Positions 1-48,539 of a DNA stretch of 64,000 nucleotides are shown piece after piece. The translations under genes were made by a program, and so were the position numbers. Positions within the stretch are counted from its first letter, which is position 1. Each line of letters begins with the position of its first letter. The notes beneath the pieces are model-generated. The model worked only from the letters and a program-made list of their open reading frames with translations. It made no database searches and had not been told where the DNA came from. Source of the stretch: Narcine bancroftii (taxonomy: Eukaryota); contig NC_091481.1 of NCBI RefSeq assembly GCF_036971445.1, positions 11,222,001-11,286,000 of the forward strand, given 5' to 3'.

Positions 1-3000
1 GGAATATTGGATGTGGGAGTTGTTGAAGTATTTTATGTATTAAATGTGTTGTCATACATTGAGTTTGAAAAGGGAAGACTGAGAGATGAAAATGGGGAAA
101 AGGGGTGGTGGTGAAGAAGTGGAAATAAGGTGTAAACAGGATATGAGATGGCCATATTGAACTATATGACTATATGACTATAAATATTAATTGAATACAT
201 AACCAAATTAAACGGAAGAAGCTGAAAAGATAAAAAAAATAGACATAGCATTTGTGCAGGAAATGCATCCAACTGAAGTGGAACATAATAAATTAAGGAG
301 AGACTGGGTAGGACACGTAGCGGCAGCATCATATAATTCAAAAGCTAGAGGTGTAGCCATATTAATAAATAAAAATGTACCAATCAAAATAGAGAAGGAA
401 ATAATAGATCCAACAGGGAGGTATGTAATGATAAAGTGTCAGGTATACTCAGAATTTTGGAATTTGCTCAATATATATGCACCTAATGAAGAGGATCAAA
501 ATTTTATGCAAGTTTTTTTTAAGATTGTAGATACACAGAGGAATATATTGATAGGAGGGGATTTTAACCTTCATTTGGATAAAACTGAACAAAAGACTAG
601 CAAAAAGAATAAAGTAGCCAAATTTATGGTTAAATCAATGCAGGAAATGAAACTTATGGATATATGGAGGAGGCAGCACCCAAGGGAGAAGGAATACTCA
701 TATTACTCGAGTAGGCATAAAACATACTCAAGGATTGATATGTTTTTGTTGTCAACCCATATTCAAGGGAGAGTAAGATAAACTGAAAATAAAGCAAGAT
801 TGCTATCAGATCATTCACTTAAAAGGCAGAAATTTAGAGAGTTTATTGAACGCCAAATTAAAATGTACATTGAAATAAATACGGAATCAGTGAAAGACAA
901 ATTTATATTATGGGATGCAATGAAAGTTTTCATTAGAGGGCAGATAATAAGTTATGTAACTAAGATGAAAAAGGACTATAATCGGGAAATAGAATAGTTG
1001 GAAAGGGAGATAGTAAGCACAGAAAAGGAACTAGCAACAAAGGATGATATAACAAAAAGAGATTTGGCGGACAAAAAAATAAAACACGAAACATTACAAA
1101 CGTATAAGGTGGAGAAGAACATAATGAAAATAAAGCAAAAGTATTATGAACTAGGAGAAAAAACACACAAAATATTAGCCTGACAACTTAAAACAGAACA
1201 AGCTAAAAGAACTGTATTGGCATCAAGGAAAAAGGACAAACAAATTACATATAATCCAAAGGAGATTAATGAGAACTTTAAGGAATTTTATGAACAATTA
1301 TACCAAACTGAGAATGAGGGGAAAGATGATAAAGTAGAAGAGTTTTTAGCTAAAATTGAACTGCCGAAATTGCAAGAAGAGGAACAAAACAATCTGATAA
1401 AACCATTTGAAATAGAGGAAGTACAGGAGATATTAAAAAAGCTGTCGAACAATAAAACGCCTGGAGAGGATGGATTCCCAATATAATTCTATAAAACATT
1501 TAAAGAGTTATTAATTCCTCCTCTCCTGGAAGTAATGAACCAGATAGAAGAAACACAAAACTAAGACAGCAATAATTACAGTAATACCAAAGATGGGGAA
1601 GGATCCACTAATACCAGCATCATATTGACCAATATCTCGACTTAATTCAGATTATAAGATAATAGCAAAATTATTCACAAACAGATTGGCCGACTGTGTA
1701 CCAAAAATATTAAAACAAGATCAATCTGGATTTATTAAGAAAAGAAGAACAGCGGATAATGTCTGTAAATTTATTAATTTAATTCATGCAGTTCAAGAAA
1801 ATAAGATACCAGCAATGATGTTGCTTTAGATGCAGAAAAAAGCCTTTGACAGAGTAGAATGGAATTATTTATTCAAAGTATTACAGAGGTTCAATCTACC
1901 AGAAAAATATATTAATTGGATTAAAGCATTATATAATGGACCATTGGCAAAGTAACAGTAAATGGATATGTATCAAACCAATTTAAATTAAGTAGGTCAA
2001 CTAGGTAAGGATGTCCACTATCTCCCTTACTGTTCGCTTTAGCAATATAACCATTGGCAAAAAATAAAACAAAAGGGATAAATATAAAGGAAAAGGAGTA
2101 TAAAATCAGTTTATTTGTAGATGACATCATAGTATACTTAACAGAACCAGAAATATCAATTTAAAAATTACATAAGAAATTGAAGGAGTATGGAGAAATA
2201 TCGGGGTACAAGATCAACGCAAATAAAAGTGAAGTGATGCCAATGAGTAATGAGGATTATACAGGATTTAAAAAAGAATCACCATTTAAATGGCAAACAC
2301 AAGCAATCCGATACCTAGGTATTAGGTTAGATAATAACTTAAGCCACCTGTACAAATTAAATTATCAGCCACTAATAAAGAAATTGCAGGAAGTCTTAGA
2401 ACATTGGAAAGAATTACCACTAATGTTGATAGGGAGGGTAAACTGCATTAAAATGAATGTCTTCCCTAGAATATAATACTTATTTCATTCGTTACCAATT
2501 CCCTTAACAGAGAAGTACTTTAACGAATAAAGAGAATAATAAGGAATTTTTTATGGAAAGGGGGGGAAACCGAGAATAACATTAGATAAATTAATAGAGA
2601 GGTTCAACCAAGGTGGTTTGCAGTTAGCAAACTTTAAAAATTATTATAGAGCAGCACAATTAAGATATTTATCAGATTTTTATCAGACAAGGGAAAAACC
2701 AGATTGGAGTAAGATAGAGCTAGATAAAATAGGGAGAAGGTACCGGAACATATACTTTATAAATGGGATGAAAAGCTGGGAAGCTCACCAGTATTGCATC
2801 ATTTACTCAATATATGGAAGAAGATTCACTTAGAAAGGAAAAAAACAAATGACCAAATACCAAAATTATTATTGATGCAAAATCAGCTAATCCCTTTTAC
2901 AATAGATAACCTTTCCTTTAGAGAATGGGAGAGAAAAGGAATTAAAAGAATAGAAAATTGTTTTTTGGGAAATAATTTATTGAACAATTGAAGTACAAAT

Positions 3001-3265
3001 ATGGAATAACTCATGGTACAATGTTTGCATGCCATCAACTGAAAGCTTACTTAAAAGATAAATTGGGAAACAGACTGAGATTACCAGAAGGAAGCAGCTT
3101 TGAATATGTGATTACAGACACAATGATAATTAAAAGGTTTATAACAAACATGTACATTAATCTCCAAGATAAGGAAAAGGATGAAAGAAGCTATAAACCC
3201 AAACAAAAGTGGGAAAAGGATTTAAACATAAAGATAAAAAAAAATGAAATATGAGAAAAGCGATG
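1..3265 (+). mobile_element. Decayed L1 LINE: inter-ORF end plus fragmented ORF2 (APE endonuclease and RT); same family as the intact copy at 22598
   Basis: ORF fragments 254-781, 800-997, 998-1183, 1217-1486, 2180-2476, 2618-3254 are colinear with and highly similar to ORF2 at 24528-28325 (e.g. RDWVGHV.AASYNSKARGVAIL, TPGEDG.PI). Many stops and frameshifts; 3' truncated. Confidence 0.95.
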
Positions 3266-5205: not shown

Positions 5206-6059
5206 GTAATAATCTACTTCAAGGTGCCTTCTTCTGTTTGTCTTTCAGTGAAGAACTGGGCTGTACACAACTTCCTCCTCCTTCACCTTCTTACTCTCTG
5301 CGTTTCCCCATTGCAGTTCGACATAGCAGATCTCATTCTCATCACTTTCATTCTATAAAATAGGAAAGCAGACAAATGGATTTATTTCTGTCTCTCTTTT
5401 AACCATCCTTGAGTCTTTTGGTGTGGAGATTTAAACCAAGCCTAATGTCCAATTACACAGATGACACAGAATTTACTTCATATTAGCAAATGCACTGCAA
5501 GCAACAATGTAATAAGAGGAAATAACTTTTAAGGTTATAGTCTAATTAATGGGAAGCCATTGCAGGTACAGATCAATATAGTGAAATCACTCGGCAGAAG
5601 GACAAATATAAATAGCAGCTTGTCAATGAGGATTTTCTGATGATAGTCAATAAGATTGTTCAGGTGACTCGTCAAGATGTAGTTCTAACCCACATTTTGG
5701 AAGGATTAACTTGTGGATATGTCCAAATGAAGTTTTACAGTTATCCCATGACTGAAAGTTTAAAACGGTCAGATAAAAAAGCATGTTTAAAATGGTACAA
5801 ATAATTATTCTAAGTGTCCCCTGGATAAGAAATGTACATGAAGGAGGAAGACAGAGAGGAAGGAATTAGAAACCAAGAGCTGAATGTCTGTCATAAGAAA
5901 AAATAAGCTATTGTCAATGACATTGTAGAAGGGCACTCATTCAAGATAATCAAGCAATGTTGATATGGCTTTGTGAAAGAGGAAATGTGTTTTATTGGAA
6001 CTCTTTGAAGATTTAACATGTGGGTAACTGATAGATGGACAATCCTGAGATTTCTAAAA

Positions 6060-13327: not shown

Positions 13328-13392
13328 CATGTTATTCTGTTCCAGGTTCAATGGTTGATTACCAGCTTGAATTCTCTTTTGTTCTTGAATTC
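13328..13392 (-). CDS. Probable first cytoplasmic exon of the V-C1 receptor (GIQEQKRIQAGNQPLNLEQNNM)
   Basis: Acceptor ttttttataaag; phase-1 entry matches the TM exon; open to donor ATG|gtaaat at 13328 (alternative donor ctg|gtaatc at 13363). Confidence 0.4.
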
Positions 13393-13992: not shown

Positions 13993-14056
13993 AGTCAGGG
14001 TAGAATCTGCAAATGGCTTGGGAGTGGCCTATAAAGTTGTTTGTGAAATGACTTAC

Positions 14057-14155
14057 CGTAAATATATTTTATAAGGAAGAGCAAAAGAAGGATAACACAA
14101 GCTGTTCCTCCACTTACGGAAAGCAAAATTGAAATCCAGATACTCCATTTATGAT
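14057..14155 (-). CDS. Transmembrane exon of the V-C1 Ig-superfamily receptor
   Basis: ttttccatag|...|gtaagt; 99 nt, phase 1-1; encodes DHKWSIWISILLSVSGGTACVILLLLFLIKYIY, with a ~23-residue uncharged hydrophobic helix followed by K. Confidence 0.8.
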
Positions 14156-14194
14156 CTATGGAAAATTGGAATTTTTAAATCACTTTATCCATGA

Positions 14195-14902
14195 ATATTT
14201 AAAGAATTCTCCAAAACATTTTCAAGGTCAATATATTCAATTACCTTCTCCAAAGGAATTTCTTGAAACAACTTATTAACAAAAAATTCACCTTCAAACT
14301 CCCCCTCTTTTATAACAATGCCCACTGCAAATCTCTAAAACTATGCAAATCTCTAAAACAGTGTAAAACTAATAAATTCCCCAGCCTAAACATTACATAC
14401 GTAATCAAAGTCTAAGCTACACTTCCAACCAGCCCTCAGAAAAACTTAGACACCAAACAAACACAAAACACACAAGACTTCGATCTCAACTGACGCAAAG
14501 ATCATAAACAAAATTCAGTTTGTTTGGTAAACTGAAGCCAAAAGATCTTTGAGAGAGAGAGAGCACAAAATTTGAAGTTGTCTTGTGTTGCTTGCAGAGA
14601 GAGGCACAACGGCTTGGTCTGGATTCTTCTGGCTGCCTTTGGAATGTCCATCCTTTTTGAAATCCCAACATTCTAAACTGTCCTCTAGACCATGACTCAG
14701 CTCTGGGCCTTCTTCCACTCCATAACACCCCCAGTTTATCATCCAAGTCCAGAAATTTTTAGATCATATTCTGCACATGCTCAGTCCATCTTCCACTTTC
14801 TCAGCAGTCCACCTTCACCTTGGCTCTCTAAGGCAAACTCTCACTTTTTAACATAAAACCACACAACATATAGGCAAATACACAACACAGAACTCTGTAA
14901 CA
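14195..14902 (-). mobile_element. LTR-like repeat (possible solo LTR)
   Basis: Minus strand starts tgttaca; non-coding; LTR-like composition. The other boundary is uncertain. Confidence 0.4.
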
Positions 14903-16903
14903 GGTCCAATTGTCTAGATGTCAAAACTTCAAAAAATTGCTGGAAGTCCACAGTTTTTGGAACCAGATTTATTATTTGGTTAGGCATTTTATTTTAACTT
15001 TCACCACATTTAAAACCTGAATCCACCTGACCCTTCTGCACACATAATACATTCATCTTTGGGTTTTTTCTTTTTCTTTTTTAATTCCTTTTCTTTCTAG
15101 CTGCTGGTGAGTTAATTTGATAGAGAGACCTTCCATCTTTAATTTCAATATTTAAAATTATTTGTTTAAAGTTGTGTTTTTGTTTGCTTTCAAAGATTTG
15201 AATAATTCAATCAGTATATCCACATTCCATGTAGTCTTGTATGTTTTTCACCTTTCTTAAAAACCCTAGTGCATAAAGTTATTTGACTAGATTAGGTCCA
15301 GTCTGACATAAACTGAATTTATATTACTGACCTTGAATAGAGCACGATACCAGAAACCACAAAACCTATCTTATCATGAACAGCAGAAATGAAAATTTGT
15401 TTGTGGGGAAAATTTGATCAATTTTAAGACCATTGAAATTAAATACTGTTGTTATTCATCAATCCAGCTTCTCGGTCTTGGCTTTAAGGATAATTTCCAT
15501 ATTTTTTAGAATTATAATGATATCGTTGGATGTTTACTGAAATTTTTTAAGTGCTTTTTTAATATTCCTGCAATGCAGTGACCAGAACTAGTCTCTTCAT
15601 TTTGTCAGGATGTCTCAAGTTATTTTAGTCATTGGTGTGAAATCATGTCAGAAATGTGACATTTGAAATGACTGTCACAAAGCAATGACTGAAATGACAG
15701 TTGAATTTTATTTTCCGACATGGAAACATTGTGTAAGAGGCAAACATGGTAGCTGATTCATACACAATGATTTTTGAAAGATAACAAGATCTATAACCAC
15801 ATAATTTATCTTTGATTGGTGAAGGAAATGAAGTTGAAACATCTGCTTTCTTTCATAACTGTCATGAGATCTATTAAATTCACCATTAACAGCAAACTAG
15901 ATTTAGCTTTAATGCGCACTCTCAATACTGCATTGGAATGTTTGCTGGATATTGTTTACATGGCTTTCAGACAATTTGATTTCAATCTGCAGATTTGCAA
16001 ATTGTTCCCAAGTGAATCAAACTGAATATTTGTCGCAAATTTCCTGCCTTCTTTCAGGGTGCTAAGTAACATTGGTTTTGTGCTTAAATTGGTCACTTTT
16101 TGTAGTTTGATAAACTTTGGTGGCACATTCCTTTTATCTGTTGAACTTCATTTTTTGTTTGTATGGTTATAGATGTGGTGAAAATTGAGGGAGTGGATTT
16201 TCTTCCGGTTGTGGTTCATCTATGTATTGATATACAAAGCATTCAATGCAATGCCGGCACAGTCAATGACATTCTGTACCATTGAAGTGTGGACACTCAC
16301 TCTACTTGCCGATCGCAGATCAAATATGTAATCTGCTAGATGTGACCATGACTTCCCCCCAACAAAAATAGTCATCAAAATAGGAGATAATATGGATATT
16401 TCCAGTTCCAGCCTGAAAGGAATTCAGCTTATATTTAAATTTGTCCGCATGAAGCCGTCAATAGGCACAGCAGCTCATGCAGTGCATTAAATGCCAAAGT
16501 GAAAACATGTTTGTATGTGTACTTGTTAAACAAAGGACTCTCATGGTGGTATTTTGCAGTCATAGAGTTAGGGATTGCTTATCATAATGAAGAGCTTTGG
16601 GCCTGAGAATTTTACTGGCTATATCTATTGATGCTAGAAAGCACTAATAAGAGTGGAGATTATGCTGACAAGGAAGCAATTCAAATGGGAATGGAACAAG
16701 TACCTTCTCAGAAAAATAAGGTGTGCCTGGTAACAAAGTAACATTATAAAAAAACAATATGATTGGAAAAAATTAAATTGATCTTCTTTATCTGTATGTA
16801 TTTTATCCATATTTAGTAAAACATTTATTCTACAACATATTGTATTGCATAAGCAGGGTCTTAATTGACCTCATGCTGAATTGATTCTATGATTCCATCC
16901 TAC

Positions 16904-17218
16904 CTTGAGCATCTGTATGTATGGCAATGAGAAGAGTACCATTTATCTCGGTTCGCGATGCTGGATGTTGAACTAAACAAGTGAATTCAGTGGACTTAGT
17001 ACAGCTTTTAGTGGAAATTCTATAAGTCCTTGTGTTGTTATAGGTTCCATCGGGATTTGATGGATTGCTTATACTGATGAGCCTGTTGGTGAGACAGGTT
17101 GGTTGAATCCTCAATGTAATATTATTTGGATAAAATCCATATGCTGAGCATGTGATAACAATGGAAGGTAAAGAAGCAATCTCATTTGAAGATTCCAGGA
17201 GCTGGATAGAAGGAGAAG
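16904..17218 (-). CDS. C1-set Ig constant domain exon of the V-C1 receptor
   Basis: tttttataaccag|...caag|gtagga; 315 nt, phase 1-1; ASPSIQLLESSNEIASLPSIVITCSAYGFYPNNITLRIQPTCLTNRLISISNPSNPDGTYNNTRTYRISTKSCTKSTEFTCLVQHPASRTEINGTLLIAIHTDAQ. C1 hallmarks C..YGFYP, NPDGTY and FTC.V.HPA are present. Confidence 0.9.
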
Positions 17219-19544
17219 CTGGTTATAAAAATAAGAGAGAGATAGATTAATAATGGAATCATTCTGATGTGTCACATCATTCATTGAAGATGACAAGATT
17301 TTTCAGGTATTAAAAACATCCATATTTTTACATGAACTTAATTATTAATGTAGATTTCTTAACATCAGTTCTGATCTTTATGTACAGTTCTGAAGACTTG
17401 AATAATTTCATTTTTGATAAGGTTACAAATGTTTGGGAGCTTTTTTTTTGCAGTGTAATACATTTACAAGTTAAATGTCATGTTTTCTCTCAGTTCTCCT
17501 TCATAATCCACTCATCCTGATCTTAGCCATTGTATCTTTACGACTGTACAGTCACGTAGATTTAGCCTTATATTTGCCCACTTTCATGCATTTCCAGCAT
17601 AACTCTGTATAGTCATCTGCTTAATTTTTGTTTCATTTATCCACCTTATTTTAATTGGCCTCCTGTGTCTTTGGCCTTAATCTTGTTGACTCAACCACTC
17701 CTATTCTCTTGCTATTTTTTTTCCTTTGACTGTATCAAACTTTTAAAATTTGCTCTTTCTTCTTCCATCAAAATGAAGCAAATCAGTAAGTGAAACATTA
17801 TTTTCTCCTACCGCCCACAAATGAATTGTAAATGTTACATCACCCCCTATAAAAGATGTAATTTCATGCAACATTCCATAATTATTCTCACTACATCTAG
17901 CATTCTAATGTTAAACAGGGATGAATTAAATCAAAGTGCATTCTTTGTCTATCTGTAATGGTAAAATAGATGGGTTTGTGCATCTTGAAAAATGCAAATT
18001 AATTTTCATTTTTTTCCATCTGGAGACCACAAATTAGCTACTTGCATCCTGTACTTTTTTAAAATCCAAATAAATAAATGAAAGTGGTCTTTTTCATGAT
18101 TTCCCTGTTTTTTATTCCATTATATTCAAATTTGCTCCACAATACATATAAAAAAATAGAATAAGCAGATACCATCATTAAGACAATGAAGTGCCAATTA
18201 AACAAAGGCCCAAATTCCACATACAAAAACAGAAAATGTTGATACTGATGAGGATTTGTGCAAATTGCCCATCATAGATCAATAGTCATCGTTTTCATAA
18301 AAAGAGGGGCAGTAAATTCAAAAGTTGTCTCTTCTCTAACATTGTCATAAGCCAAGAGTGATACATTTGCTCTTGACTTGGAGACTTTCATATTTTACAT
18401 TATAAATCAGGATTCTGGCCTGATAAGGCAATGAGTTTGAACTATGCTTGATCTTGACATGCTTCCTCTCTTTGCAGATCAATTAATGTGAACATTCCTC
18501 ACTTTTAACCTGGACCATGCACAACAACACTGTCTACTTGAGCCGTGGTGTGACTCCATGTGATATTCAGAGCATTCCTCTACTGTCATTTGAACAAGTA
18601 TGACTGTTATTAATCTGATCTTTATGCCATTTGATTCAGTCTAATTTAAACATGCTTTATTTTTCAAAACATTAACAACTATGAATAAAATAAAAGAGAT
18701 AGATATAATTTGGAAATATAGAAAGCCAATTCTCAATAAAATTGATAATTATACTCTCTTCCATTTTGACATAAATAGATATGTAAAAGTAATTTACACA
18801 AAAATTATACTCACTGATATTGCAGCTTATTGATCCAAATATTAAAACATTGCAATAATAAAAATATAATAATATTGTGCCATGTGGAACTAAATTCAAC
18901 AGGCAATTAATAAGAGCATTTCAAAATATTATTGTACATACTGATTTAATATGCACGAGTTAATTTCACGCTCATGAACCACACAACTTCAATAGCACAA
19001 AGTGAGAAATGCAGGTTGCGTACAAGTGAAAAAGCTGAATAGTCGAGCAATATTTTGATCCAATTTCTCTTAATTTTAAGCATCTGTGCTAAGTAATCGG
19101 CATTGATCAGTAATATTATTTATTAGCTGTACTTTTCTCAGTTTTATTCAAATGTTGTAGTCCTCCCCATCTCTGCAAACTTACAAAGTATTTGATTTCT
19201 AATTATTTCCAGTTCTGACAAAAGGACTTTGACTTGATTCTGTTTCTTTTAGCACAGATTCTGTCTGACCTGTTATTTTTAGCAACTTCTGATTTTATTA
19301 CTGTTATCTCATCAAAAGTGTGTTTTGAGATTCTGCCCCTTCCTACTCTAGGAAAAGTGAGGATTATCAGAGACCTCTTGATGGCATGCTGACTCAGGTC
19401 AGCTAACTCACCACAGTGTGATGATCAAATGACACATCTCTCATTAACTGAAACAGCTGTATAATATTATTATCTGCAAAGGTTTGTATTAATTTTCCCA
19501 TTAATGCCTGCAAAATTATTTTAAAATAATTTTAAAATACTTAC

Positions 19545-19904
19545 CAGTTACATTCAGTTGGGTACTGTTTCCACGTGCTTTAAAAATTGGTGCTGGAGCC
19601 ATCCAAATCATCTCACAGTTGTAGATGCCATTGTCACGGACTTGAACATCAGTAATTATTAAGGTGAAAACTTTCAGTGTTAAAATGTGCTTTACACAGT
19701 ATCGAAAATGAGACACCCATTGTTTAATATTTGACAGATTTGCAATGATCTTTTCAGAATGCGTTCCACTTTCACGGAAAGTCCACTTTAGTTGAAATTT
19801 CAAAAGTTTAGAGTTGGAATAGGAACAATTTAATAAGATTGAGTCTCCTTTTGTGGTGGTCAGAGTGTCGGGCTGCTGTAAATCATAATTTATCCTGTGT
19901 CCAG
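19545..19904 (-). CDS. V-set (VJ-type) Ig domain exon of the V-C1 receptor
   Basis: ctcttcttag|...actg|gtaagt; 360 nt, phase 1-1; AGHRINYDLQQPDTLTTTKGDSILLNCSYSNSKLLKFQLKWTFRESGTHSEKIIANLSNIKQWVSHFRYCVKHILTLKVFTLIITDVQVRDNGIYNCEMIWMAPAPIFKARGNSTQLNVT. B-strand Cys, C-strand Trp, DxGxYxC and a J-like G strand (GNSTQLNV). Confidence 0.92.
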
Positions 19905-19937
19905 CTAAGAAGAGATTCAGAAAATGTAAATAACGTA

Positions 19938-20215
19938 CAAGTCCACGATCCTTTATCTGGAACCCTTGGGGGACAGTGCGTTCCGAATTTCAGATTTTTC
20001 TGGATTTCGGAAAGCCCACCCAAATTGTGCTGCCGTATCCACCCCCACCCCTTTCCAGTCACCTGGCCATCTCCCCCGACCGCCGGTCTCTCGGCCGCCC
20101 GGCCATCTCCCCCGACCGCCAGTCCGTCGGCTGCCACCCCCGGCCACCAGTCCTCACTTGCTGGATTTTGAAGCTTTCCAGATTTTAGATGTCCGGATAA
20201 AGGATCGTGTACCTG
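19938..20215. mobile_element. Tc1/mariner-pogo (Tigger-like) MITE
   Basis: 24-bp TIRs caagtccacgatcctttatctgga / rc caggtacacgatcctttatccgga; TA on both sides (19936-37, 20216-17); internal repeat ggccatctccc(c)cgaccgcc x2. Confidence 0.85.
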
Positions 20216-20843
20216 TACTGCATTTCAAAGAATACGAGTCTTTGCTTGAATCCCCTCCACTATTTCAATTTAAGTAGTTAACACATTAAATTTCTTGATT
20301 CAGTTAGAGCAAAAATTGGAAGTTCATAATAATACATCATATTTTCAGCTATAATTTGAGTATAATTTTAAAGCTGCACAGAATATAACACATTATTGCT
20401 GCAAGAAGATAATAAAATAGATATACTGTATTAGGTTCAAATGTAACATGGAATTAGCAGTAGCCAGTTTATGAACTGAAGGTACTTTGAGAGGGCACTA
20501 CATAGAAACAAATCAGCAAAGCCCCATGAGAATTATGAGATACAAACAACACTGGCACAAAATATCTCAACACCTACTGTAAATCAAAAATTTACTGAAT
20601 TACATTGCAAGTTTTGGAAAGGTTCAATTAATTTTTCACAAACATCTGTGGAATGTTACAGAATAAAATATAAAAATTGCAATAAAATAGAAGGAATTAA
20701 ACTCCAGTAAAAAGAATGTTTAGAAGACATTTATGGCTAACATACACTGCTGCTTGACCTACTGAGTTCTACATTGTTTTTTAGATTTTTGTATCTGCAG
20801 TCTCTTTTGACTTGTTAATATCAAACCCTGATTATCCTCATAC

Positions 20844-20892
20844 CTGCAAACGGTATCTGTATCTGGAGGAAAAGATAAAATGATATCCTCAT
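20844..20892 (-). CDS. Leader (signal peptide) exon of the V-C1 receptor
   Basis: aacATG ... gcag|gtatga; 49 nt = MRISFYLFLQIQIPFA + phase-1 G; joins the V exon in frame; typical IgSF leader-exon size and phase. Confidence 0.75.
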
Positions 20893-22884: not shown

Positions 22885-23928
22885 ATGGCTCACAGAGCCG
22901 AGCAAAAGTGCGCAACCGCGCATGCGCATGAAAAAAAACATACCGACGGGAGGGGGGACCAGCTGGGGAGTCGATCTCCACAGCCGGCAACGACAGCTGC
23001 AGAACACCTGCAGCAAGAAGAGACCACAGAAGACAATGGAAACAAGAAAGAAGAGGAGGAAAGGGCAGCAAAGAAACAACAGATGGTCAACCCAGAGGAA
23101 GAAGAAGAGGAAGAATACAGTGAAATAGATAAAGGGAAAGGCAAGGTAAAGGATATACTTGCTCTTGTTAGAGGATACATGGAGTCATTTAAAGAATGGC
23201 AAACACAGGAATTCAATGATTTAAGAAGAAGAATAAACAACACAGAAAAGAAAATAAATAAAATGGATATGACCTTAACAGAAATGGGGAAAAAAATGGA
23301 CAAGATGGAAGAACGGGCAGTAGCAGCAGAAATGGAGGTAGAAGACTTAAAAAAGAAATTGGAGGAATCTAATAAAAAAACTAAAGAGACACAAGAATTA
23401 CTAGCCCAAAAAATAGATATAATGGAAAATTATAACAGAAGAAATAACATAAAGATAGTGGGCCTTAAGGAAGATGAAGAAGGCAAGAATATGAGGGAGT
23501 TTATAAAAGAATGGATCCCTAAGGCCCTAGGATGTCCAGAACTACAGCAAGAAATGGAAATAGAAAGGGCACATAGAGCATTGGCCCCTAAACCACAACC
23601 ACAACAAAAACCAAGATCTATTGTAGTAAAATTCCTAAGATATACTACAAGAGAAAAGGTACTGGAGAAGACAATGGAAAAAGTAAGAGAGGGCAACAAA
23701 CCACTGGAGTATAAAGGGCAAAAAATCTTCATTTATCCAGATATAAGCTTTGAACTCCTAAAGAAGAGAAAAGAGTTCAATGCAGCAAAAGCGATTTTAT
23801 GGAAGAAAGGATATAAATTTACACTGAAGCATCCTGCGGTATTGAAAATATTTATTCCAGGACAACAAAACAGACTATTCTCGGATCCAGAAGAAGCACG
23901 AAAATTTGCAGAACAATTACAAAAATAG
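22885..23928 (+). CDS. L1 ORF1p (coiled coil, RRM, CTD; Transposase_22-like), 347 aa
   Basis: Long coiled coil, then ENYNRRNNIKIVGLKE, EIERAHR, PRSIVVKFLRY, IFIYPDIS. Uninterrupted. Confidence 0.93.
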   Translation: MAHRAEQKCATAHAHEKKHTDGRGDQLGSRSPQPATTAAEHLQQEETTEDNGNKKEEEERAAKKQQMVNPEEEEEEEYSEIDKGKGKVKDILALVRGYMESFKEWQTQEFNDLRRRINNTEKKINKMDMTLTEMGKKMDKMEERAVAAEMEVEDLKKKLEESNKKTKETQELLAQKIDIMENYNRRNNIKIVGLKEDEEGKNMREFIKEWIPKALGCPELQQEMEIERAHRALAPKPQPQQKPRSIVVKFLRYTTREKVLEKTMEKVREGNKPLEYKGQKIFIYPDISFELLKKRKEFNAAKAILWKKGYKFTLKHPAVLKIFIPGQQNRLFSDPEEARKFAEQLQK

Positions 23929-24527
23929 ACTGAGGGAGGAAGACGGGTAATGAGAGCAAAAATTATCACGATTGATATGTATGTGGGTAAAGACAAAAAT
24001 AGACTGAGGGATGAAGACGGGTAAGGAGGGTAAAAATGACCACGATTGATATGTATGCGGGTAAATAGGTATAAGAGTGAATAGAGACAATGGGCATATG
24101 TGAAAGTATCTGTAATTAGAGGAAAACATAGAGAGTATAGACAAGAATCAATAAGGGAAGGTAATGGAATAGAGAGAATAAGGAGGGAATTAAAAGAGTG
24201 ACCTTTGTGACATATAAAAAGCGAAATCTTTTCTGGGGGGGGCTGGGTGGGGGAAAAGAGCGGTCACTGCAAAATCAGTTGACGCTTGCGAGTGGATTCG
24301 CAAATCCAAATGGAGAGGGGAGATGTGGTTGTCCGACAAGGGATAAAGGGCAACTCAGGAGGGGAAGGGGAGATTGGGGATAAAGAAGATAGAAATAGGA
24401 GAATAAGGAAAATGTTGGATGTTGTAGGAATGTTGTCTGGTAAAGAGTTGAAAATAAGAAAACAGAAATGGAAAAGGAGGAAAGGTAATGATGGAAAAAT
24501 GGAAAGAGAAGATAAACAAAATATAAA

Positions 24528-27500
24528 ATGGCTACGCTGAACTATATGACTCTAAATATTAATGGAATACATAACCAAATTAAAAGGAAGAAACTACTAA
24601 ATTTACTGAAAAAGGAAAAAATAGATATAGCATTTGTCCAAGAAACACACTTAACTGAATTGGAGCACAAGAAATTAAAGAGAGATTGGGTAGGACATGT
24701 AACAGCAGCATCGTATAATTCAAAAGCAAGAGGAGTGGCTATATTAATTAGCAAAAATGTGCCATTTAAAATAGAAGAGGAAATAATAGATCCAGCAGGG
24801 AGATATGTTATGATAAAATGTCAGATATATTCAGAGCTTTGGAATCTACTTAATATATATTCACCTAACGAAGAAGATCAAAAGTTTATGCAAGATATCT
24901 TTTTGAAGGTAGCTAATACGCAAGGGAACATACTAATAGGAGGGGATTTCAATCTGAATTTGGATCCAAATATGGATAAAACGGGGAAAAAAATTAACAG
25001 GAAGAACAAAGTAACCAAATTTATAATTAAATCAATGCAAGAAATGAAACTTGTGGACATATGGAGGAAACAAAACCCAAAAGAAAAGGAATACTCATAC
25101 TACTCGACTAGACATAAAACATACTCAAGGATAGACCTATTCCTGTTATCAGCCCACATTCAAGGGAGAGTTAGGAAAATGGAATATAAAGCTAGACTAT
25201 TATCGGACCACTCACCCCTGTTATTGGCAATAGAGCTAGAGGACATCCCTCCAAGAATGTACAGATGGAGATTAAACCCCATGCTACTTAAAAGACAGGA
25301 TTTTAGAGAATTTATTGAAAAACAATTAAAAATGTACTTTGAAGTAAATACGGAATCAGTGGAAGATAAGTTTATACTATGGGACGCAATGAAAGCATTC
25401 ATTAGAGGGCAAATAATAAGTTATGCAACCAAGATGAAGAAGGACTATAATCAGGAAACAGAGCAGTTGGAAAGGGAAATAATAAACATAGAAAAAAAAT
25501 TAGCAATAAAGGAAGATACAACCAAAAGAAGAGAATTGGCGGATAAAAAAATAAAATATGAAACATTACAAACATATAAGGTGGAGAAGAATATAATGAA
25601 GACAAAACAGAAATATTATGAACTAGGGGAAAAAACACACAAAATCCTAGCATGGCAGCTTAAGACAGAGCAAACTAAGAAAATGGTATTGGCAACAAGG
25701 AAAAAAGACAAACAAATTACATATAATCCAAAAGAAATTAAGGAAAACTTCAGAGAATTCTATGAACAATTATACCGAACCGAAAACGAAGGGAAAGAAG
25801 GGAAAATAGATGAATTTTTGACTAAAATTGAACTACCAAAACTACAAATAGAGGAACAAAATAAATTAACAGAACCATTTGGAACAGTAGAAATACAAGA
25901 GATAATAAAAAATTTACCAAATAATAAGACACCAGGAGAGGATGGACTCCCAATAGAATTCTACAAAACATTTAAAGACCTAATAATACCGCCCCTCCTG
26001 GATGTAATCAACCAGATTGATGAGACACAAAACTTACCAGATTCATGTAAAACAGCAATAATTACAGTGATACTAAAACAAGGGAAAGATCCACTCTCAC
26101 CAGCGTCATATAGACCAATATCTCTGCTAAACACAGATTATAAGATAATAGCTAAACTATTAGCAAACAGATTAGCAGAACAGGTACCGAAAATGGTAAA
26201 TTTAGACCAAACTGGATTTATCAAAAAAAGACGCACAACAGACAATATTTGTAAATTTATTAACTTAATTCATGCAGTAGAAGGAAATAAAGCACCGGCA
26301 GTAGCAGTTGCATTAGACGCAGAGAAGGCCTTCGACAGAGTAGAATGGAATTACTTGTTCAAAGTATTGCAAAAATTCAGTTTACCGGAGAAGTATATTA
26401 ATTGGATTAAAGCATTATATAAGGGACCATTAGCGAAAGTGACAGTAAATGGACATGTATCAAAGCAATTTAACTTAAGCAGGTCAATGCGGCAGGGATG
26501 CCCACTATCACCATTATTGTTTGCGCTAGCTATAGAACCACTAGCAGAATCGATAAGAAGAGATAATAATATAAAAGGAATAAAAATAAAAGACAGGGAA
26601 TATAAAATCAGTCTGTTTGCGGATGATGTGATAGTGTACTTAACAGAACCAGAACTATCAATAAAAGAACTATATAAGAAATTGAAGGAATATGGAGAAG
26701 TGTCGGGATACAAGATAAACGTAAATAAAAGTGAAGCAATGCCTATGAATAACGCGGATTTCTCAAAATTTAAGGAGGAATCCCCATTCAGATGGCAAAC
26801 GCAGGCAATAAGATACCTAGGTGTGCAAATAAACAAAAATCTAGGCCAATTATATAAACTCAATTACAATCCACTAATGAAAAAATTACAGGACGATTTA
26901 GAGCATTGGAAAGAGCTACCACTAACACTGATAGGAAGGATAAACTGTATTAAAATGAACATTTTTCCAAGGATACTATACTTATTTCAGGCATTGCCAA
27001 TACAACTGACAGAAAAATTCTTCAAAGAGTTAAAGAAAATAATAAGGAGATTTTTATGGAGAGGGGGGAAACCGAGGATAGCACTAGATAAATTAACAGA
27101 ATGGTATAAACAAGGAGGCTTACAATTGCCAAACTTCAAAAATTATTATAGAGCCGCACAATTAAGGTACCTATCAGATTTTTATCAAACAAGGGAAAAA
27201 CCAGACTGGACGAGACTAGAATTAGATAAAATAGGGGAAAAGATACCTGAACACATATTATATAAATGGGACAAAAAATTGGTACAACATAGAACTTCTC
27301 CAGTATTACACCATCTCCTCAATATATGGAAGAAGATTCATGTAGAAAGAAATAAAATAAATTACCAAATACCAAAACTAATATTGACGCAAAATAAGCT
27401 ACTCCCTTTTACAATAGACAACCTTGCCTTTAGAAAATGGGAAAAAAAAGGGATTAAAAGAATAGAAAATTGTTTTTCAGGAAGTAGATTCTTATCCTTT

Positions 27501-28325
27501 GAACAAATGAGAGATAAGTACAATATAACTGGAGATACAGCGCTGGCATATTACCAACTGAGATCCTACTTGAAAGATAAATTAGGAAGCAACTTGAGTT
27601 TACCAGAGGGAAGTAACCTTGAATATGTGATTACAGATACAATGTTAATCAAAAGATTTATAAAAAATATGTATATTAAACTGCAAGAAAAGGAAAATGA
27701 GGAAACAAATGGTAAAACTAAACAAAAATGGGAACAAGATTTAAATATAAAGATAAAAAAGGAAACATGGGAGAAGTTATGCTCTGGAACGATGAGAAAT
27801 ACAATAAATACGAGGCTGCGTATGATACAATATAATTGGTTACACAGACTATACATTACACTGCAAAAGTTAAATAAATGGGACCCAACAGTATCTGATA
27901 GATGTTTTCGATGTAAAAAAGAAAGGGGAACAACAATTCATGCAATCTGGACATGTGAGAGAGTAGAAAAATTTTGGGATGATCTCAATCAGATATTAAA
28001 TAAAATAACAGAAAACAATATACCAAAGAATCCAGAGATCTTTCTCCTAAGTAACATAAAAAATAAAGAATTTGGAATTGACTTGGAAGATGCACAAAAA
28101 AGATTTGTCAAGATAGCCCTAGCCGTAGCAAAAAAATGTATTATGTCAACCTGGAAATTGGAAGATAATTTGAAAATACAACAATGGTATATAGAAATGA
28201 ATAAATGTATTCCATTAGAAAAAATAACATATAGTTTAAGAAATAATATTGAAATATTCGAACAAGTATGGGAGCCTTACATTAAATACAATAGCGAAAA
28301 CCTACCGGGAACAAACATTACCTAA
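24528..28325 (+). CDS. L1 ORF2p (APE endonuclease, reverse transcriptase, CCHC zinc knuckle), 1265 aa
   Basis: EN motifs TLNING, QETH, GGDFN, SRID, SDH; RT motifs YRPISLLN, DAEKAFD, QGCPLSP, FADD, YLG; C-terminal CFRC...H...C. Uninterrupted. Confidence 0.98.
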   Translation: MATLNYMTLNINGIHNQIKRKKLLNLLKKEKIDIAFVQETHLTELEHKKLKRDWVGHVTAASYNSKARGVAILISKNVPFKIEEEIIDPAGRYVMIKCQIYSELWNLLNIYSPNEEDQKFMQDIFLKVANTQGNILIGGDFNLNLDPNMDKTGKKINRKNKVTKFIIKSMQEMKLVDIWRKQNPKEKEYSYYSTRHKTYSRIDLFLLSAHIQGRVRKMEYKARLLSDHSPLLLAIELEDIPPRMYRWRLNPMLLKRQDFREFIEKQLKMYFEVNTESVEDKFILWDAMKAFIRGQIISYATKMKKDYNQETEQLEREIINIEKKLAIKEDTTKRRELADKKIKYETLQTYKVEKNIMKTKQKYYELGEKTHKILAWQLKTEQTKKMVLATRKKDKQITYNPKEIKENFREFYEQLYRTENEGKEGKIDEFLTKIELPKLQIEEQNKLTEPFGTVEIQEIIKNLPNNKTPGEDGLPIEFYKTFKDLIIPPLLDVINQIDETQNLPDSCKTAIITVILKQGKDPLSPASYRPISLLNTDYKIIAKLLANRLAEQVPKMVNLDQTGFIKKRRTTDNICKFINLIHAVEGNKAPAVAVALDAEKAFDRVEWNYLFKVLQKFSLPEKYINWIKALYKGPLAKVTVNGHVSKQFNLSRSMRQGCPLSPLLFALAIEPLAESIRRDNNIKGIKIKDREYKISLFADDVIVYLTEPELSIKELYKKLKEYGEVSGYKINVNKSEAMPMNNADFSKFKEESPFRWQTQAIRYLGVQINKNLGQLYKLNYNPLMKKLQDDLEHWKELPLTLIGRINCIKMNIFPRILYLFQALPIQLTEKFFKELKKIIRRFLWRGGKPRIALDKLTEWYKQGGLQLPNFKNYYRAAQLRYLSDFYQTREKPDWTRLELDKIGEKIPEHILYKWDKKLVQHRTSPVLHHLLNIWKKIHVERNKINYQIPKLILTQNKLLPFTIDNLAFRKWEKKGIKRIENCFSGSRFLSFEQMRDKYNITGDTALAYYQLRSYLKDKLGSNLSLPEGSNLEYVITDTMLIKRFIKNMYIKLQEKENEETNGKTKQKWEQDLNIKIKKETWEKLCSGTMRNTINTRLRMIQYNWLHRLYITLQKLNKWDPTVSDRCFRCKKERGTTIHAIWTCERVEKFWDDLNQILNKITENNIPKNPEIFLLSNIKNKEFGIDLEDAQKRFVKIALAVAKKCIMSTWKLEDNLKIQQWYIEMNKCIPLEKITYSLRNNIEIFEQVWEPYIKYNSENLPGTNIT

Positions 28326-35832: not shown

Positions 35833-38800
35833 TGTAGCGACTGCTGCGGCAGTGCAACTGAGTAAAGAGACATCCACACAGTGTGAGGGTGAACCAAAGA
35901 ATGACTTTGTTGGTACTGTGACAAGAGTATATAGATATGTTTTGGGGAGATAAATTGGGAAAGGTTTGTTAGTGTAGGTCACATACAAACACTTTAAAAC
36001 AGATCTTATTTAAAATATTGGAGCTCTGCCCCATGCTAGACCTGTCGGGGCCAACAGTCTTTGCAAGAGCTTTGGAGAGTGTCCAAGAGACTTGACTAAT
36101 GGATTGTTGTTTACAAAAAGGCAACAGATGAAAGAGCTTGTCAGAGCCACAGACAGTCTGAAGGGGAACTTGCTGTTTTAAGAGGATCATGTGGCTTTGC
36201 AAGCAGAGAGAGTAAAACTGGCTTTCTCTCTGTGTGAGAGAGGGAGAGAGAGACACACAGAGATCACTTCTACAGTATTACAGCCAGTAACAGCAGCTAG
36301 GACTGGAACAGTACAAGCTGGCAAGCTTATGGAAAGCCCTATTTGGAAGATGAGTTTGTAAGTGCTTTGTTCAGCCTGGTAAAAGCCCTTGTGGGTCATG
36401 CAAGAGGAGAGGACTGGCTGTCTAATGTTTTACTTGGAATAAGAGAAACAAAAAAGCACTCTGTGGTGACCTGAAGAAAGAGGTTATCATCTGGAGAACC
36501 CTGAGGGGGAAAGATGTGTCAGTAAGACACTGAAATGGCTGATTTAAAAAATTTAAAAAAAAAATTTCATATATATATAAAAGGAATCAGTTGTGGGTGT
36601 CAACGTACAATGAATCTCTCTCTGAAAACTGAGCAGTAACCATTTACCTTTTAAGCACCAAAGCCTGGTGAACTTTATAAATGTTAAATTCTGTGCACTG
36701 TATAAGAATTGCCTGCAACCAGTAAACTTGGAGAAATGAGAAGTGAGATTGGACTATGAACCAAAGAACTTTTCTGAACTTATATACACATTACATACAC
36801 GTGCACTTAGAATTAGAAGGGGGTGAAGTTAGGTTAAGTAAGTCAATAATGATGTTAAAGTTTGATTCTATTTTCATGTTTAAAGATAATTAAAAGCAAC
36901 TTTTGTTTAAGTAACCATTTGTCTTGGAGAATATCTATTGCTGCTAGGTTTATGGGTCCTTTGGACTTGTAACAGTACCTAAAAGTACCCAAGACAGTTC
37001 ATCTATCCAATCCAGTCCCTTAAGACATGCTATGGGAACCATTTTCATATGACAGTGAAAACTTTTCCATTAAGCCATTGGACTGGGGATGATAGGCCAT
37101 CGACTGAAAAAATTGTGTTCCCAACAACTGTCCGATTGTGGACCATAACCCAGGTATAAACTGAGCTCCTCTGTAAGAGTAAATATGCACAGCTAGTCTG
37201 AAACACACTATCCAATTGGCAAAGAGGGCTCTTGCACAAGCTGAGGTGGAGGTGTTGGAGAGCAGGACAACCTCTGGCCATCTCATGAACCTGTCTACTA
37301 TTGTGAAGAGGTAAGTAGCACCCTTGAATGGGGTAACGGGCCGATGATATCAGCAACATGAGGGTGCAAAAACCTGTAGTGGGCTTTGGTGTGGCGCTGA
37401 ACTTTTGAAGTCTGGCACTGGATGCATGTCCTGGTCCAAGTGCCACCTTGCATGTGCAAGACATGGAACATGAATTTAGTTGTCACGAGCCTTGTTGTTG
37501 TCCTAATAGAAGGGAGAGCCAAACTGTGTGGCGTCAAACACCTGAAGTCGCCACGCAGAAGGTACAATGGGCCTCGGTTGACCGGTGGATATGTCACAAA
37601 GTAGAGAGGCAGTTGCTGGACCAAAATTTATGTCCTCCAATTTCAGTCCTGATATGGCAGCACAATACGTAGCCATCTCTTCATCTTCCTGCTGAGCTGC
37701 TGTCAAAGCTGTGTTGTCTATACTGGGAACAGACGAAAGGAGGGAAGCAATGGTGGTGCAATGTGTTTCATCGTAGTCATAAACTGTGAAATGTAAGAGT
37801 TGTTGTTGTGCTGATCATGGATCTGACATCTTGGCAAAGGCGAAATTCAATGGCTTGTGATCCATGTAGAGCATGAACCCTCTGCCCTCTAGGAAGTAGT
37901 GGAAATGCCATATGGCCAAGTAGAGGGCAAGGAGCTCCCTGTCAAAAGCATTGTACTTTTGCTCCAGTGGTCTCAAATGATGACTAAAGAAAGCTAGGGG
38001 TTTCCAAATGCCATCGACGAGCTGCTCCAGGACCCCACCTACGCAGTGTCTGATGCATCCACCGTCTGAGCTTTTGGCACTTCACACCTCGGATGCACAA
38101 GCTTAGTGGCTCTCGTTAGCACTCCTTTGGTAGTCTTGAATCCAGCCTTGGCCTCGTCATTCCATTTCAGTTCCTTGGGAAGTGTGGGAAGGTGTTTGAA
38201 AAGTGGGTGTATAACTTTGGCTGCAGCTGCATTACCACGAAACGATGGTAAAAGTTCATCATGCCAACAAACTCATGGAGGTCTTTAATGGTTGAGGGTC
38301 TTGGAAATTTGCAAATGGCCTTGATCTTGGAAGGTAGTGGAACTGCTCCGTGGTCACTGCAGTGGCTGAGGAAATTGATTGATGTGAGGCCAAACTGGCA
38401 TTTGGCCAGGTTGATCGCTACCCTGTGGTCATCTCGCTGCTGACATAATTGACGGAGATGGGCTTGGTTCGCTGCTGCTAGTGGCTGGTGATAGGATGTC
38501 GTCTAAATAAACAAATACGAAATCCAGATCCCGGCTAACTGTGTCCATTAGACATTGAAATGTCTGGGCTGTTTTTTTTTAAACCGAAAAGCACACGGAG
38601 GAATTCAAATAGCCCAAAAGGGGTATTCTAGGCAGTCTTAGGAATGACATTTAGGTGAACTGGGATCTGATGGTCAACTCGCACCAGGTCGATTTTGGAG
38701 AAAATCTTAACGCCGTGAAGGATCGCAGAGAAATCCTGTATATGGGGAACTGGGTAGGGATCTGCTGCAGTGATGTCATTCAGTCACAGATAGCCCCCAC

Positions 38801-42909: not shown

Positions 42910-44975
42910 CCTTTTATTAAAGAAAATTAAAGAAGATTTAATAAGATGAAAGGATTTGCCAATTTATTTAATAGGAAGGATAAATTGTGTGAATATGAAT
43001 ATTTATCCGAGAAAACAATCCCTATTTCAATCATTACCAATTTTTTTACCAACAATGTTTTTTTTTCCAAGATTTAAATAAAAGTGTAAGAAGATTTATT
43101 TGGCAAGACAAAATGCTGAGGATTGCATTGGATAAATTAACATGGAAGTATGACCGGGGTGGGGGGGGGGGGGGGCGGGGGAGATGGTGGAATTACGAAT
43201 GCCTAATTAAAAAAATTACCATAAAGCAGCTCAACTTAGATTTTTGTCTTGTTATCAGACTGATGAAAAGGCAGTGTGGGTACAAATTGAAATGAGTAAA
43301 TTAGGAGAAAATAATTCTGAGCATATTTTGTATAAATAGCATGAAGGATTGTTGAGAGGGCAAAAAATACACCAATCTTGAAGCATATATTTAATGTTGG
43401 AATGGATACATGTAGAAAGAGGAAAGAAAAATGATCAATTGGCTAGAATGTTATTAAAGCAAAATCCTTTGATTCCTTTCACGGTTAATAATGTTTATTT
43501 TGACATTTGGTACAATTGTGGAATAAAAACAATAAAGGATTGTTTTTTGGATTCTGTATTTTTTTTTACTTTTGACCAATTGAAAGATAAGTATAACATA
43601 CCAAGTAATACTATTTTTTCTTATTATCAGCTTAAATCATATTTAAAAATAAAGCTAGGGATGAATTTTAGAATACCTGAACAAAGTCAATTTGAATATT
43701 TAATAACTGATACAGTTATCAAAAGATTTATTACTAATGTGTATATAAAATTGCAAGAGACTATGCAGAAAAAGGATATATTTGAAACTGAAGTGAATTG
43801 GGAAAGAGATTTAAAGATACAAATTCAAGTATGGTAAAAAATTATGTTGTGAAAGTGTAACTAATACAATTAATGTTAGATACCAAATGATACAATTCAA
43901 TTTTTTACATCAATGATACTCTGTAGCCGTTTCCTACGAAGAAACACACACACTCGCAGTCTGGGAGGTTAAACTCTGACTTTATTGAGGCTGGAAATGG
44001 TCCTTTTGTACAGTTGGAGTTCCTGCTGTTTGGTTGATTGGCTGACATCAACAGCATGAATAACAAAAATGGGATTCCCGCCCACGGGAATATTCTTGCA
44101 TATGAATACCCTTCTTCCCCAGCCTGGTGTTGTTCTGTTAGCTCAGCAGCCTGGCCAGCACCATTTTGGAGCTGCTGGTCTTGTACGGCCCCAGCTTCCA
44201 ACCGTGCAGGTTCGCTATTGCTAGGGGTCATGTTTATGAGTTATGCCACTGTTTATTACCGTGCGTTGTGCCGGCCCGATCTCTGCAGTTGAGGGCTGTC
44301 ACAATTCCATATAAATTACATGGGAATTAATTCTAATTTTTCTGATCAATGTTTCAAATGTAGTAAAGAAGTAGGAACTTTCTTGCATGCAGTTTGGCAA
44401 TGTGAAAAAGTAGAAAATTTTTTGGAAGATATTATTATTTTATTGGGATGAGTTATGAGGATGCAAGTTTTGAAAGATCCCAAAATATTTTTATTGGGAG
44501 TTATTTTTCAGTTGAACTTAGATATTTATCAGAAGTTTTTAAGTGTAGCAAAGAAATGTATAGCTGTAACTTGGAAATTAGATAATGTGGAGTTGCATAA
44601 ATGGTAAATAGAATGACTAATTTGTATACCATTAGAGAAAATAATGTATAATTTACGGAATCAACCAGAAAAATTTGATAAGATTTGGAAACCTTGTATG
44701 GATTTTATGGCTTCATCTACAGCATCCGCCACTCCAGCTCCAACTCACCTTAGTTAATTCAAGGTTCAAGGTCATTATGTAAATTTGAAATTTAACTAAT
44801 TAATGATGGATATATGATTATCTGGCTTTCTTTTCTATTTTTCCTACTTTTTGGGGATGGAGGGGTAGAAAATAGGGAAATATGTATTTTTGCATATTTT
44901 AAAATCTGTATAATATGATAAATACTGTATTTGTATTGATGCAAACAAAAAATAAAATTTACAACAACAAAAAAA
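42910..44975 (+). mobile_element. Decayed L1 ORF2 3' half and 3'UTR, interrupted by a solo LTR
   Basis: RIALDKLT, QNPLIPFT, YYQLKSYLK, FEYLITDT and CF.C..E.GTF.HA.W.C remnants; A-tail near 44970. Confidence 0.85.
43922..44303 (-). mobile_element. Solo LTR (382 bp) inserted in L1
   Basis: TG...CA termini, near-TSD actc/attc, aataaa on the minus strand; cleanly interrupts L1 coding remnants. Confidence 0.75.
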
Positions 44976-45967: not shown

Positions 45968-46174
45968 GTAGAGCAATAAATTATGGTCAAAGAGTGGCCC
46001 CCCTGATCAAAGCAGAACCATTAAGAGGACTGGTGGATGAATCAATCAAGATTGAGATTGCACATTTAACCCCAAACCAACAGGTTACATTGCACTCACA
46101 GATTTTGTCTGAGGATGACGATTGGTGGATGGCATATGCCCACTATGTCAGTGATTCGGAGGGAACTGTTCGAG
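45968..46174 (+). CDS. ACOT: ACOT coding exon 2 (N-terminal Bile_Hydr_Trans-type domain)
   Basis: GRAINYGQRVAPLIKAEPLRGLVDESIKIEIAHLTPNQQVTLHS...WMAYAHYVSDSEGTVR; P.RGLVDE and A.Y..D..G.V motifs; phase 1-1. Confidence 0.9.
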
Positions 46175-48470: not shown

Positions 48471-48539
48471 CTATCAGAACAGGCAAGGATTTCAATCTGA
48501 TATTGGCTCAATATTGCTATCTTCACCTGTTTTGCTGAC

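Follow-up and report, generated by a model that had tools for sequence, protein, structure and literature searches.

A non-rearranging V-C1 receptor gene with ITIM-consensus tail motifs in the lesser electric ray, and its relatives from chimaera to turtle

What kind of receptor is encoded where a V domain with a CTLA-4-like loop is followed by a C1-set domain in a gene that does not rearrange? The question is raised by a 64-kb stretch of the genome of the lesser electric ray, Narcine bancroftii (contig NC_091481.1, positions 11,222,001 to 11,286,000; hereafter the window, in whose own numbering all positions below are given). A first-pass annotation, made from the letters of the window, had proposed four exons of an undescribed VJ-C1 receptor, which either linked costimulatory receptors to the ancestor of antigen receptors or represented a domain-shuffled checkpoint receptor of the CD28 family. 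The locus is an intact, expressed six-exon gene on the minus strand, and it probably encodes an inhibitory receptor with a V-C1 ectodomain from a family not yet described, the function being predicted from motifs and their conservation. The earlier proposal held in that the gene is non-rearranging and spliced as proposed, and in that no description of this V-C1 family was found in the literature; the gene itself, however, was already predicted in RefSeq, and the novelty lies in recognizing the family and the CD28-type signature that it carries.

Exon structure and transcription of the locus

The coding sequence is distributed over the following six exons, of which exon 6 encodes two matches to the consensus of the immunoreceptor tyrosine-based inhibitory motif (ITIM).

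20844..20892, minus strand: exon 1, coding part, with start codon and signal peptide (16 codons plus 1 base; ATG at 20892; donor GT at 20843-20842)
19545..19904, minus strand: exon 2, germline-joined VJ-type V domain (Pfam V-set; RNA junctions at both ends)
16904..17218, minus strand: exon 3, C1-set domain (Pfam C1-set; RNA junctions 19545>17218 and 16904>14155)
14057..14155, minus strand: exon 4, short stalk and transmembrane helix (acceptor AG at 14157-14156; unbroken RNA cover over 14056-14155)
13328..13392, minus strand: exon 5, membrane-proximal cytoplasmic segment (loose end of the RNA mapping to 13362-13391; tblastn)
5245..5352, minus strand: exon 6, coding part, cytoplasmic tail with the two ITIM-consensus motifs (tblastn, 100% identity; AG acceptor; TGA at 5247-5245)

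When these exons were joined by coordinate, the reading frame was unbroken over all six, and the translation was exactly that of RefSeq XP_069765712.1, a 331-residue isoform from Narcine bancroftii automatically named SIRP-alpha-like. The V exon alone matched XP_069765714.1 of the same species at 100% in a phmmer search against 1.84 billion representatives. The leader, V, C1 and transmembrane exons were present on the minus strand as the first-pass annotation had described them, all with phase-1 junctions, AG acceptors and GT donors in the splice table. What it had overlooked were the two cytoplasmic exons (13392-13328 and 5352-5245), which also have canonical splice sites, exon 5 being entered in phase 1 and left in phase 0. 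The gene spans to 5245 and beyond instead of ending at 14057, with a 3' untranslated region (UTR) that continues past exon 6 and a 5' UTR that reaches upstream of coding exon 1.

A single exon, with a splice donor at its end, holds the whole V domain up to and including the J-like G strand; there is no split into V and J segments as in immunoglobulin (Ig) and T-cell receptor (TCR) genes. No heptamer-spacer-nonamer resembling a recombination signal sequence was found in 19400-20000, in agreement with the germline-joined VJ arrangement claimed at the outset. Neither a second V or C1 exon nor an Rfam family was found within the window. Intron 1, otherwise AT-rich, contains a GC-rich stretch at 20040-20160 (minus strand) with a near-repeat of about 39 bases, in which G-G-C-G-G-T-C-G-G-G-G-G-A-G-A-T-G-G-C-C is present twice.

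Four public RNA runs from one study and one coded organism, recorded only as "RNA?", were used, and their contigs were placed on 14001-20000. Spliced contigs of 2.4-2.6 kb in three runs (X1, X2 and X3) skipped exactly 19545>17218 and 16904>14155; runs X1 and X2 each provided one contig of about 2.5 kb that spanned both junctions, and run X3 provided two overlapping contigs. The former junction joins V to C1, which the first-pass annotation had set as its key test. The skipped stretches begin and end with CT..AC on the plus strand, corresponding to GT..AG on the gene strand, and since the contigs lack introns and have canonical junctions, their source can only be spliced RNA. No letters differed between the RNA contigs and the genome over the exon sequence, and the word depth was 74-98 in two runs versus 0-9 across most of the introns. 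At one end the contigs run into the leader exon, the 30 loose letters behind 19906 being the reverse complement of 20875-20846, and at the other the loose end before 14056 maps to 13362-13391, which gives the fifth exon. The contigs carry 1,705 to 2,205 more letters downstream of exon 4; if these were contiguous after exon 6, the 3' UTR would reach roughly 3.2-3.7 kb in the window.

Two rejected splice sites may be mentioned here. An acceptor of the transmembrane exon near 14100 gives a stop or a transmembrane helix that is too short, and was ruled out by the RNA junction at 14155. A donor in exon 5 at G-C-T-G/G-T-A-A-T-C (the slash marking the cut) was ruled out because orthologue tails read on through the site. 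Regarding isoforms, RefSeq isoform X2 (P0001, 268 aa) uses a donor G-T-A-A-G-T inside the transmembrane exon (GT at 14117-14116, minus strand), with a frame shift in exon 5 and a predicted protein without membrane anchor or ITIMs, and the RefSeq records of catshark, stingray and axolotl list isoforms that skip the transmembrane or the C1 exon. Neither this donor nor isoforms skipping the transmembrane or C1 exon were seen in the RNA contigs over 14001-20000.

Two intronic stretches, 14201-15000 (intron 3) and 19801-20000 (intron 1), showed RNA word depths from thousands to 100,000 together with many short contigs of 95-99% likeness, and resemble dispersed, transcribed repeats more than segments of the receptor gene.

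Protein domains and distribution of the family

The protein is of type I and consists, in order, of a signal peptide, a V domain, a C1 domain, an uncharged transmembrane helix and a cytoplasmic tail that carries two tyrosine motifs. The V exon matched Pfam V-set (E 1.2e-14). Its FG loop reads M-A-P-A-P and its G strand G-N-S-T-Q-L-N-V, so that the end of the V domain quoted in the first-pass annotation was correct on translation. Among the three Cys of this exon, the extra one, in the D strand, is unpaired and precedes the F-strand Cys by 27 residues, as had been described; it occurs in rays only and is not a trait shared across the family. The count of seven N-glycosylation sequons (N-x-S/T) was likewise confirmed in the ectodomain, with four in V and three in C1.

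The C1 exon matched Pfam C1-set with an E-value of 1.7e-7 (31.9 bits versus a cut-off of 21), and a weaker, CD80-like match to C2-set_2 was also obtained (E 7.4e-5). The motifs G-F-Y-P and F-T-C-x-V-x-H are both present, so that the Pfam score, F-Y-P and C-x-V-x-H agree on C1-set. The domain is nonetheless atypical: the canonical C-strand Trp is replaced by Ile in Narcine and by Phe, Ile or Leu in relatives, and is kept only in the chimaera and white-shark subgroup (Callorhinchus and Carcharodon), whose C1 is typical. An extra conserved Cys pair is located at residues 178 and 209.

Neither a stalk Cys nor a transmembrane Y-x4-T was found in the exon 4 translation. The tail motifs I-C-Y-V-E-L and V-V-Y-S-P-V (residues 304 and 324) each agree with the ITIM consensus; YxxM and YxNx are absent from the tail. 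By motif, the protein is composed like an ITIM receptor, that is, of type I with an uncharged transmembrane helix and a tail in which [SIVL]-x-Y-x-x-[ILV] occurs one or more times. Structural models were obtained with a predicted local distance difference test (pLDDT) score of 89.8 for V alone and above 85 over most of both domains for V-C1; the latter model matched Fab and gamma-delta TCR chains in Foldseek, which is a generic likeness only.

The orthologue search proposed for sharks, chimaeras and basal bony fish was productive, with members found in rays, sharks, a chimaera and gar and also in tetrapods. In the whole-protein search, identity to Narcine was 63% for the orthologue of Mobula birostris, 60% for Hemitrygon akajei, 54% for both Pristiophorus japonicus and Heptranchias perlo, 52% for Heterodontus francisci, 50% for Scyliorhinus canicula and 43% for Stegostoma tigrinum. 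More distant members were recovered from Callorhinchus, Carcharodon, Lepisosteus (gar), Ascaphus (frog), Ambystoma (axolotl) and Pelusios (turtle). A maximum-likelihood tree placed the Narcine gene in a ray clade (100/100) within a shark-and-ray set (88/98), and the tetrapod members formed a clade of their own (97/96); gar remained an unplaced long branch, and the deeper nodes were weak. By sequence comparison, the Narcine gene is the ray orthologue of a shark/ray gene that falls within a wider V-C1 family of chimaera, gar, frog, salamander and turtle.

The V framework, four C1 Cys and the tail motifs were conserved across the alignment. The tail motifs are kept as [IV]-C-Y-x-x-L and [IV]-V-Y-S-x-V in seven elasmobranch species, and the gar tail has two ITIMs. 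In the tetrapod members, an ITIM is followed by T-E-Y-x-x-[IL], the consensus of the immunoreceptor tyrosine-based switch motif (ITSM), which both T-E-Y-S-V-L of axolotl and T-E-Y-M-A-I of frog fit. The automatic RefSeq names of the members conflict (kappa-like, lambda-like, SIRP-alpha-like, CEACAM1-like and uncharacterized), SIRP-alpha-like being the name in Narcine, catshark and axolotl. The family accessions were absent from the text and the nine supplementary files of the CD28-family survey PMC11599192. A shared-word protein search with the V exon alone was blank, which means little because this method is limited by length and shared words.

The CTLA-4-type loop, descent and predicted function

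The CTLA-4 signature Y-x-C-x6-PPP-x4/5-G-x-G has been used to admit CD28X to the CD28 family (Quiniou et al. 2024, PMC11599192). It was present in all examined ray (except Narcine), shark, chimaera, gar, axolotl and turtle members of the V-C1 family: P-P-P stands six residues after the F-strand Cys, and G-[NK]-G-T follows five residues later. The frog member keeps PPP and lacks G-x-G. Throughout the 145 proteins compared, the signature occurred in 23, all of which were V-C1 members, their isoforms or one CD28H-like protein. At the same positions Narcine has P-A-P and G-N-S, confirmed by RNA, and does not match even the loose pattern; it is the sole member with both PPP and GxG decayed. The M-x-P-x-P loop to which the first-pass annotation had drawn attention was partly borne out: a CTLA-4-like loop exists family-wide, but the conserved element is P-P-P, and this has decayed in Narcine.

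The gapless alignment to CTLA-4 given in the first-pass annotation was reproduced with phmmer. When the 43-residue E-F-G segment of Narcine was searched against 177,635 PDB sequences, mouse and human CTLA-4 came top at a marginal E-value of 0.004, aligned over 38 residues with M-A-P-A-P opposite M-Y-P-P-P. For a ray relative without strands A and B (P0003), the first 18 PDB matches were CTLA-4, from E 3.6e-5, and CD28 matched at E 0.012. With a V-only profile, CTLA-4 was the best non-rearranging V domain in PDB (44.9 bits, E 8e-11), and in a language-model search with the V part of each of two orthologues, a PD-1 family cluster ranked first or second, which is a lead only.

The V search also found shark and ray membrane proteins with a single or double V domain (P0119 of Pristiophorus; P0124 and P0140 of Hypanus; P0040 and P0115), which carry E-I-P-P-P or x-P-x-P loops plus G-N-G. 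The Pristiophorus protein fits the published motif of CD28HL1/2 for complementarity-determining region 3 (CDR3) and has a Y-V-N-V tail motif. These sequences suggest that the PPP-loop receptors of cartilaginous fish extend beyond the V-C1 family.

The loop could mean that the V domain is specifically homologous to those of the CD28/CTLA-4 family, the V-C1 family being either a tenth, two-domain branch or a relic VJ-C1 form from which single-V receptors arose by loss of the C1 exon. The identical spacing of Y-x-C-x6-PPP-x5-G-x-G within the family (PMC11599192), the CTLA-4 matches of the ray relative and of the V-only profile, and the rank of the PD-1 cluster all speak for such kinship, as do the retrieval of the Pristiophorus protein with its CD28H-like motif, the phase 1-1 ectodomain exons and the C1-less isoforms predicted by RefSeq in stingray and axolotl (P0002 and P0063). 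Against these stand several observations. The likeness is concentrated in strands E to G, and the full loop signature is missing in Narcine itself. The V-only profile gave 47-49 bits for TCR alpha/delta V versus 44.9 for CTLA-4 in PDB; the top 50 Foldseek matches of the V model were all TCR, antibody or VNAR V domains; and VIA of the same model gave Z 16-17.7 for TCR V, with PD-1 at rank 26 (Z 15.2) and CTLA-4 and CD28 outside the top 50. The conserved C'-D Cys pair, stalk Cys, transmembrane YxxxxT and tail YxxM or YxNx are all absent, and the sole neighbour seen, an ACOT/BAAT-like gene, is not a synteny marker named for any CD28-family member. The checkpoint-receptor idea of the first-pass annotation retains a family-wide loop signature, but the tail is of the ITIM type rather than YxxM, and over the whole V domain TCR V does at least as well as CTLA-4 by profile and clearly better by fold. 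The V domain combines a TCR-like body with a CTLA-4-type CDR3 and G strand, and common VJ-type descent and convergence of one loop would fit the sequences and the model equally. Overall, a specific link of the family to CD28/CTLA-4 is plausible but unproven, and outright homology of the V domains seems doubtful to us. It is unlikely that a non-rearranging VJ-C1 receptor with the shape of an antigen-receptor chain gave rise to the costimulatory and checkpoint receptors, which would have become single-V by dropping the phase 1-1 C1 exon, and that this family binds B7-type ligands via its PPP loop.

The reading we favour is that of an inhibitory V-C1 receptor. Its V domain would bind a cell-surface ligand via the CDR3-like FG loop, which in the rest of the family retains the P-P-P and G-x-G signature used by CTLA-4, CD28 and CD28X; once the ligand is engaged, both tyrosines of the tail would be phosphorylated and would recruit SH2 phosphatases, and cell activation would be damped. 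In Narcine, P-A-P and G-N-S are what remains of this signature, and ligand binding there has probably changed or become weaker. It weighs against this reading that ITIM-consensus motifs are short and common, that Narcine lacks the full loop signature, that the V domain taken whole compares better with TCR V, and that the exon 5-6 junction rests on the RefSeq model, canonical splice sites and tail conservation, not on the reads placed on 14001-20000. The decay of the loop could also mark a gene heading to non-function, transcribed and no longer acting as a receptor. PPP and GxG are both lost in Narcine alone, and its terminal branch in the tree is long (0.31 versus 0.05 for Mobula and 0.10 for Hemitrygon), but a frame intact over six exons, canonical splice sites, the retained framework residues, four C1 Cys and both ITIMs, and the RNA depth of the exons make this most improbable. 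A divergent member of the SIRP family, acting as an inhibitory receptor of myeloid type that binds a CD47-like ligand, would likewise combine a VJ-type V, a C1-set domain and ITIMs, and in that case the PPP loop, which is not known from SIRP, would be convergent. The ITIM motif of SIRP is I-T-Y-A-D-L, which those of the receptor resemble, and the name SIRP-alpha-like points the same way, as do matches of SIRP-alpha (2wng) to the V+C1 profile (E 8.8e-21; this profile was flooded by antibodies in PDB and is uninformative on V alone) and of SIRP-gamma to C1 (E 1.5e-5). For C1 and for V+C1, however, UrIg2, Ig and TCR chains rank above SIRP, no SIRP V is among the top 60 for the V-only profile, the single C1 departs from the V-C1-C1 order of SIRP-alpha, and the automatic names of the orthologues disagree (kappa-like, lambda-like and CEACAM1-like), so that we regard membership in SIRP as improbable. 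Still less do we expect an antigen-receptor-like chain acting as a dimer, which would pair via V and C1 with itself or a partner in the manner of Ig, TCR and UrIg2. In its favour, the nearest structures to the V model are V domains of TCR alpha/delta (Z up to 17.7), Fab and gamma-delta TCR chains come up with the V-C1 model, and shark UrIg2 is the best PDB match of both C1 (E 1.3e-10) and the V+C1 profile (E 1.1e-25), but an interchain bond would find no Cys in the stalk, the canonical Trp is missing from the C1, and no partner gene is located in the window.

An identity with the B7 family was set aside on the ground that the V domains of B7 proteins are not known to have a J-like G-x-G-T G strand.

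From chimaera to turtle, the V-C1 family places a CD28-type CDR3 signature on a TCR-like V domain, followed by a C1 domain and an inhibitory-type tail. A gene linking costimulatory receptors to the antigen-receptor ancestor is a hypothesis; if such descent were true, checkpoint receptors would be tied to the VJ-C1 stock that is thought to be the source of antigen receptors, and an unstudied inhibitory receptor would have to be counted among those of the shark, gar, amphibian and turtle immune systems. If the likeness were convergent, the PPP loop would have arisen twice as a ligand-binding device. Either way, this is a family without a curated name, whose members are labelled inconsistently in public databases.

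Neighbouring sequences and comparison with known receptors

The only visible neighbour of the receptor gene is the ACOT/BAAT-like gene, at 45811-54371 on the plus strand. It matched Pfam Bile_Hydr_Trans at 45811-46245 (E 1.3e-10) and 51541-51876 (E 3.6e-6), and a third exon-like stretch at 54087-54371 carries a G-G-G-G-L-x-E-Y-R motif and has no Pfam match. This gene is not among the synteny markers named in PMC11599192, and no CD28-family synteny marker was seen within the 64-kb window. An apparently full-length long interspersed nuclear element (LINE) occupies 22885-28325 on the plus strand, with an ORF1-like frame of 347 residues (22885-23928) and an uninterrupted ORF2 of 1,265 residues (24528-28325) in which sequence like that of an endonuclease and a reverse transcriptase is present; the same element recurs in truncated form at 212-3251 and 43382-43834. 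At 37000-38500 on the minus strand, retroviral or long terminal repeat (LTR) pol-like frames (integrase-core-like and RNase H/reverse-transcriptase-like) are broken by stops, and this stretch is therefore taken as a decayed LTR retroelement.

Among known systems, UrIg and UrIg2 are non-rearranging, antibody-like V-C1 genes of sharks (PMC12227049). UrIg2 shares with the Narcine gene a germline-joined V followed by C1 in an elasmobranch. It has the order V-C1-C2-C3 and forms disulfide-linked dimers, whereas the Narcine gene has V-C1 followed by a transmembrane helix and an ITIM tail, and the likeness between them is at the generic level of C1 domains (best single-domain score 20.6 bits). The VJ-type V followed by C1-set, type I topology and ITIMs are shared with SIRP-alpha and the SIRP family, which, however, have two C1 domains versus one here and stand no nearer by sequence than do Ig, TCR or UrIg2.

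The 2024 survey recognized nine CD28-family members, all having a single V domain, and left the family's origin unexplained (PMC11599192). The orthologues of the Narcine gene resemble CTLA-4, CD28 and CD28X in the FG-loop and G-strand signature and in the N-G-T sequon, at identical spacing, and further shared features are one exon per domain, phase-1 junctions and a non-rearranging V with a J-like G strand. The difference lies in the V plus C1-set ectodomain, in contrast to a single V before the transmembrane helix, and in the lack in Narcine of the C'-D Cys pair, stalk Cys and transmembrane YxxxxT. PD-1 has no C1 and no conserved Pro in its CDR3 loop (PMC11599192), and the 2025 PD-1 paper contains no mention of C1 or PPP. 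A separate PD-1 gene has been reported in cartilaginous fish, where CD28HL3 was not found; given this separate gene and the missing Pro, identity of the receptor with PD-1 was ruled out. The PD-1 V domain nevertheless matches that of Narcine at about E 2.5e-5. Among the tail types of the CD28 family, the two ITIM-consensus motifs of the receptor, which are not of the YxxM/YxNx type, resemble only those of the PD-1 and CD28HL3 branch: both have an inhibitory-type tail, and in the tetrapod relatives of the Narcine gene the ITIM is followed by an ITSM, T-E-Y-x-x-[IL], as in PD-1.

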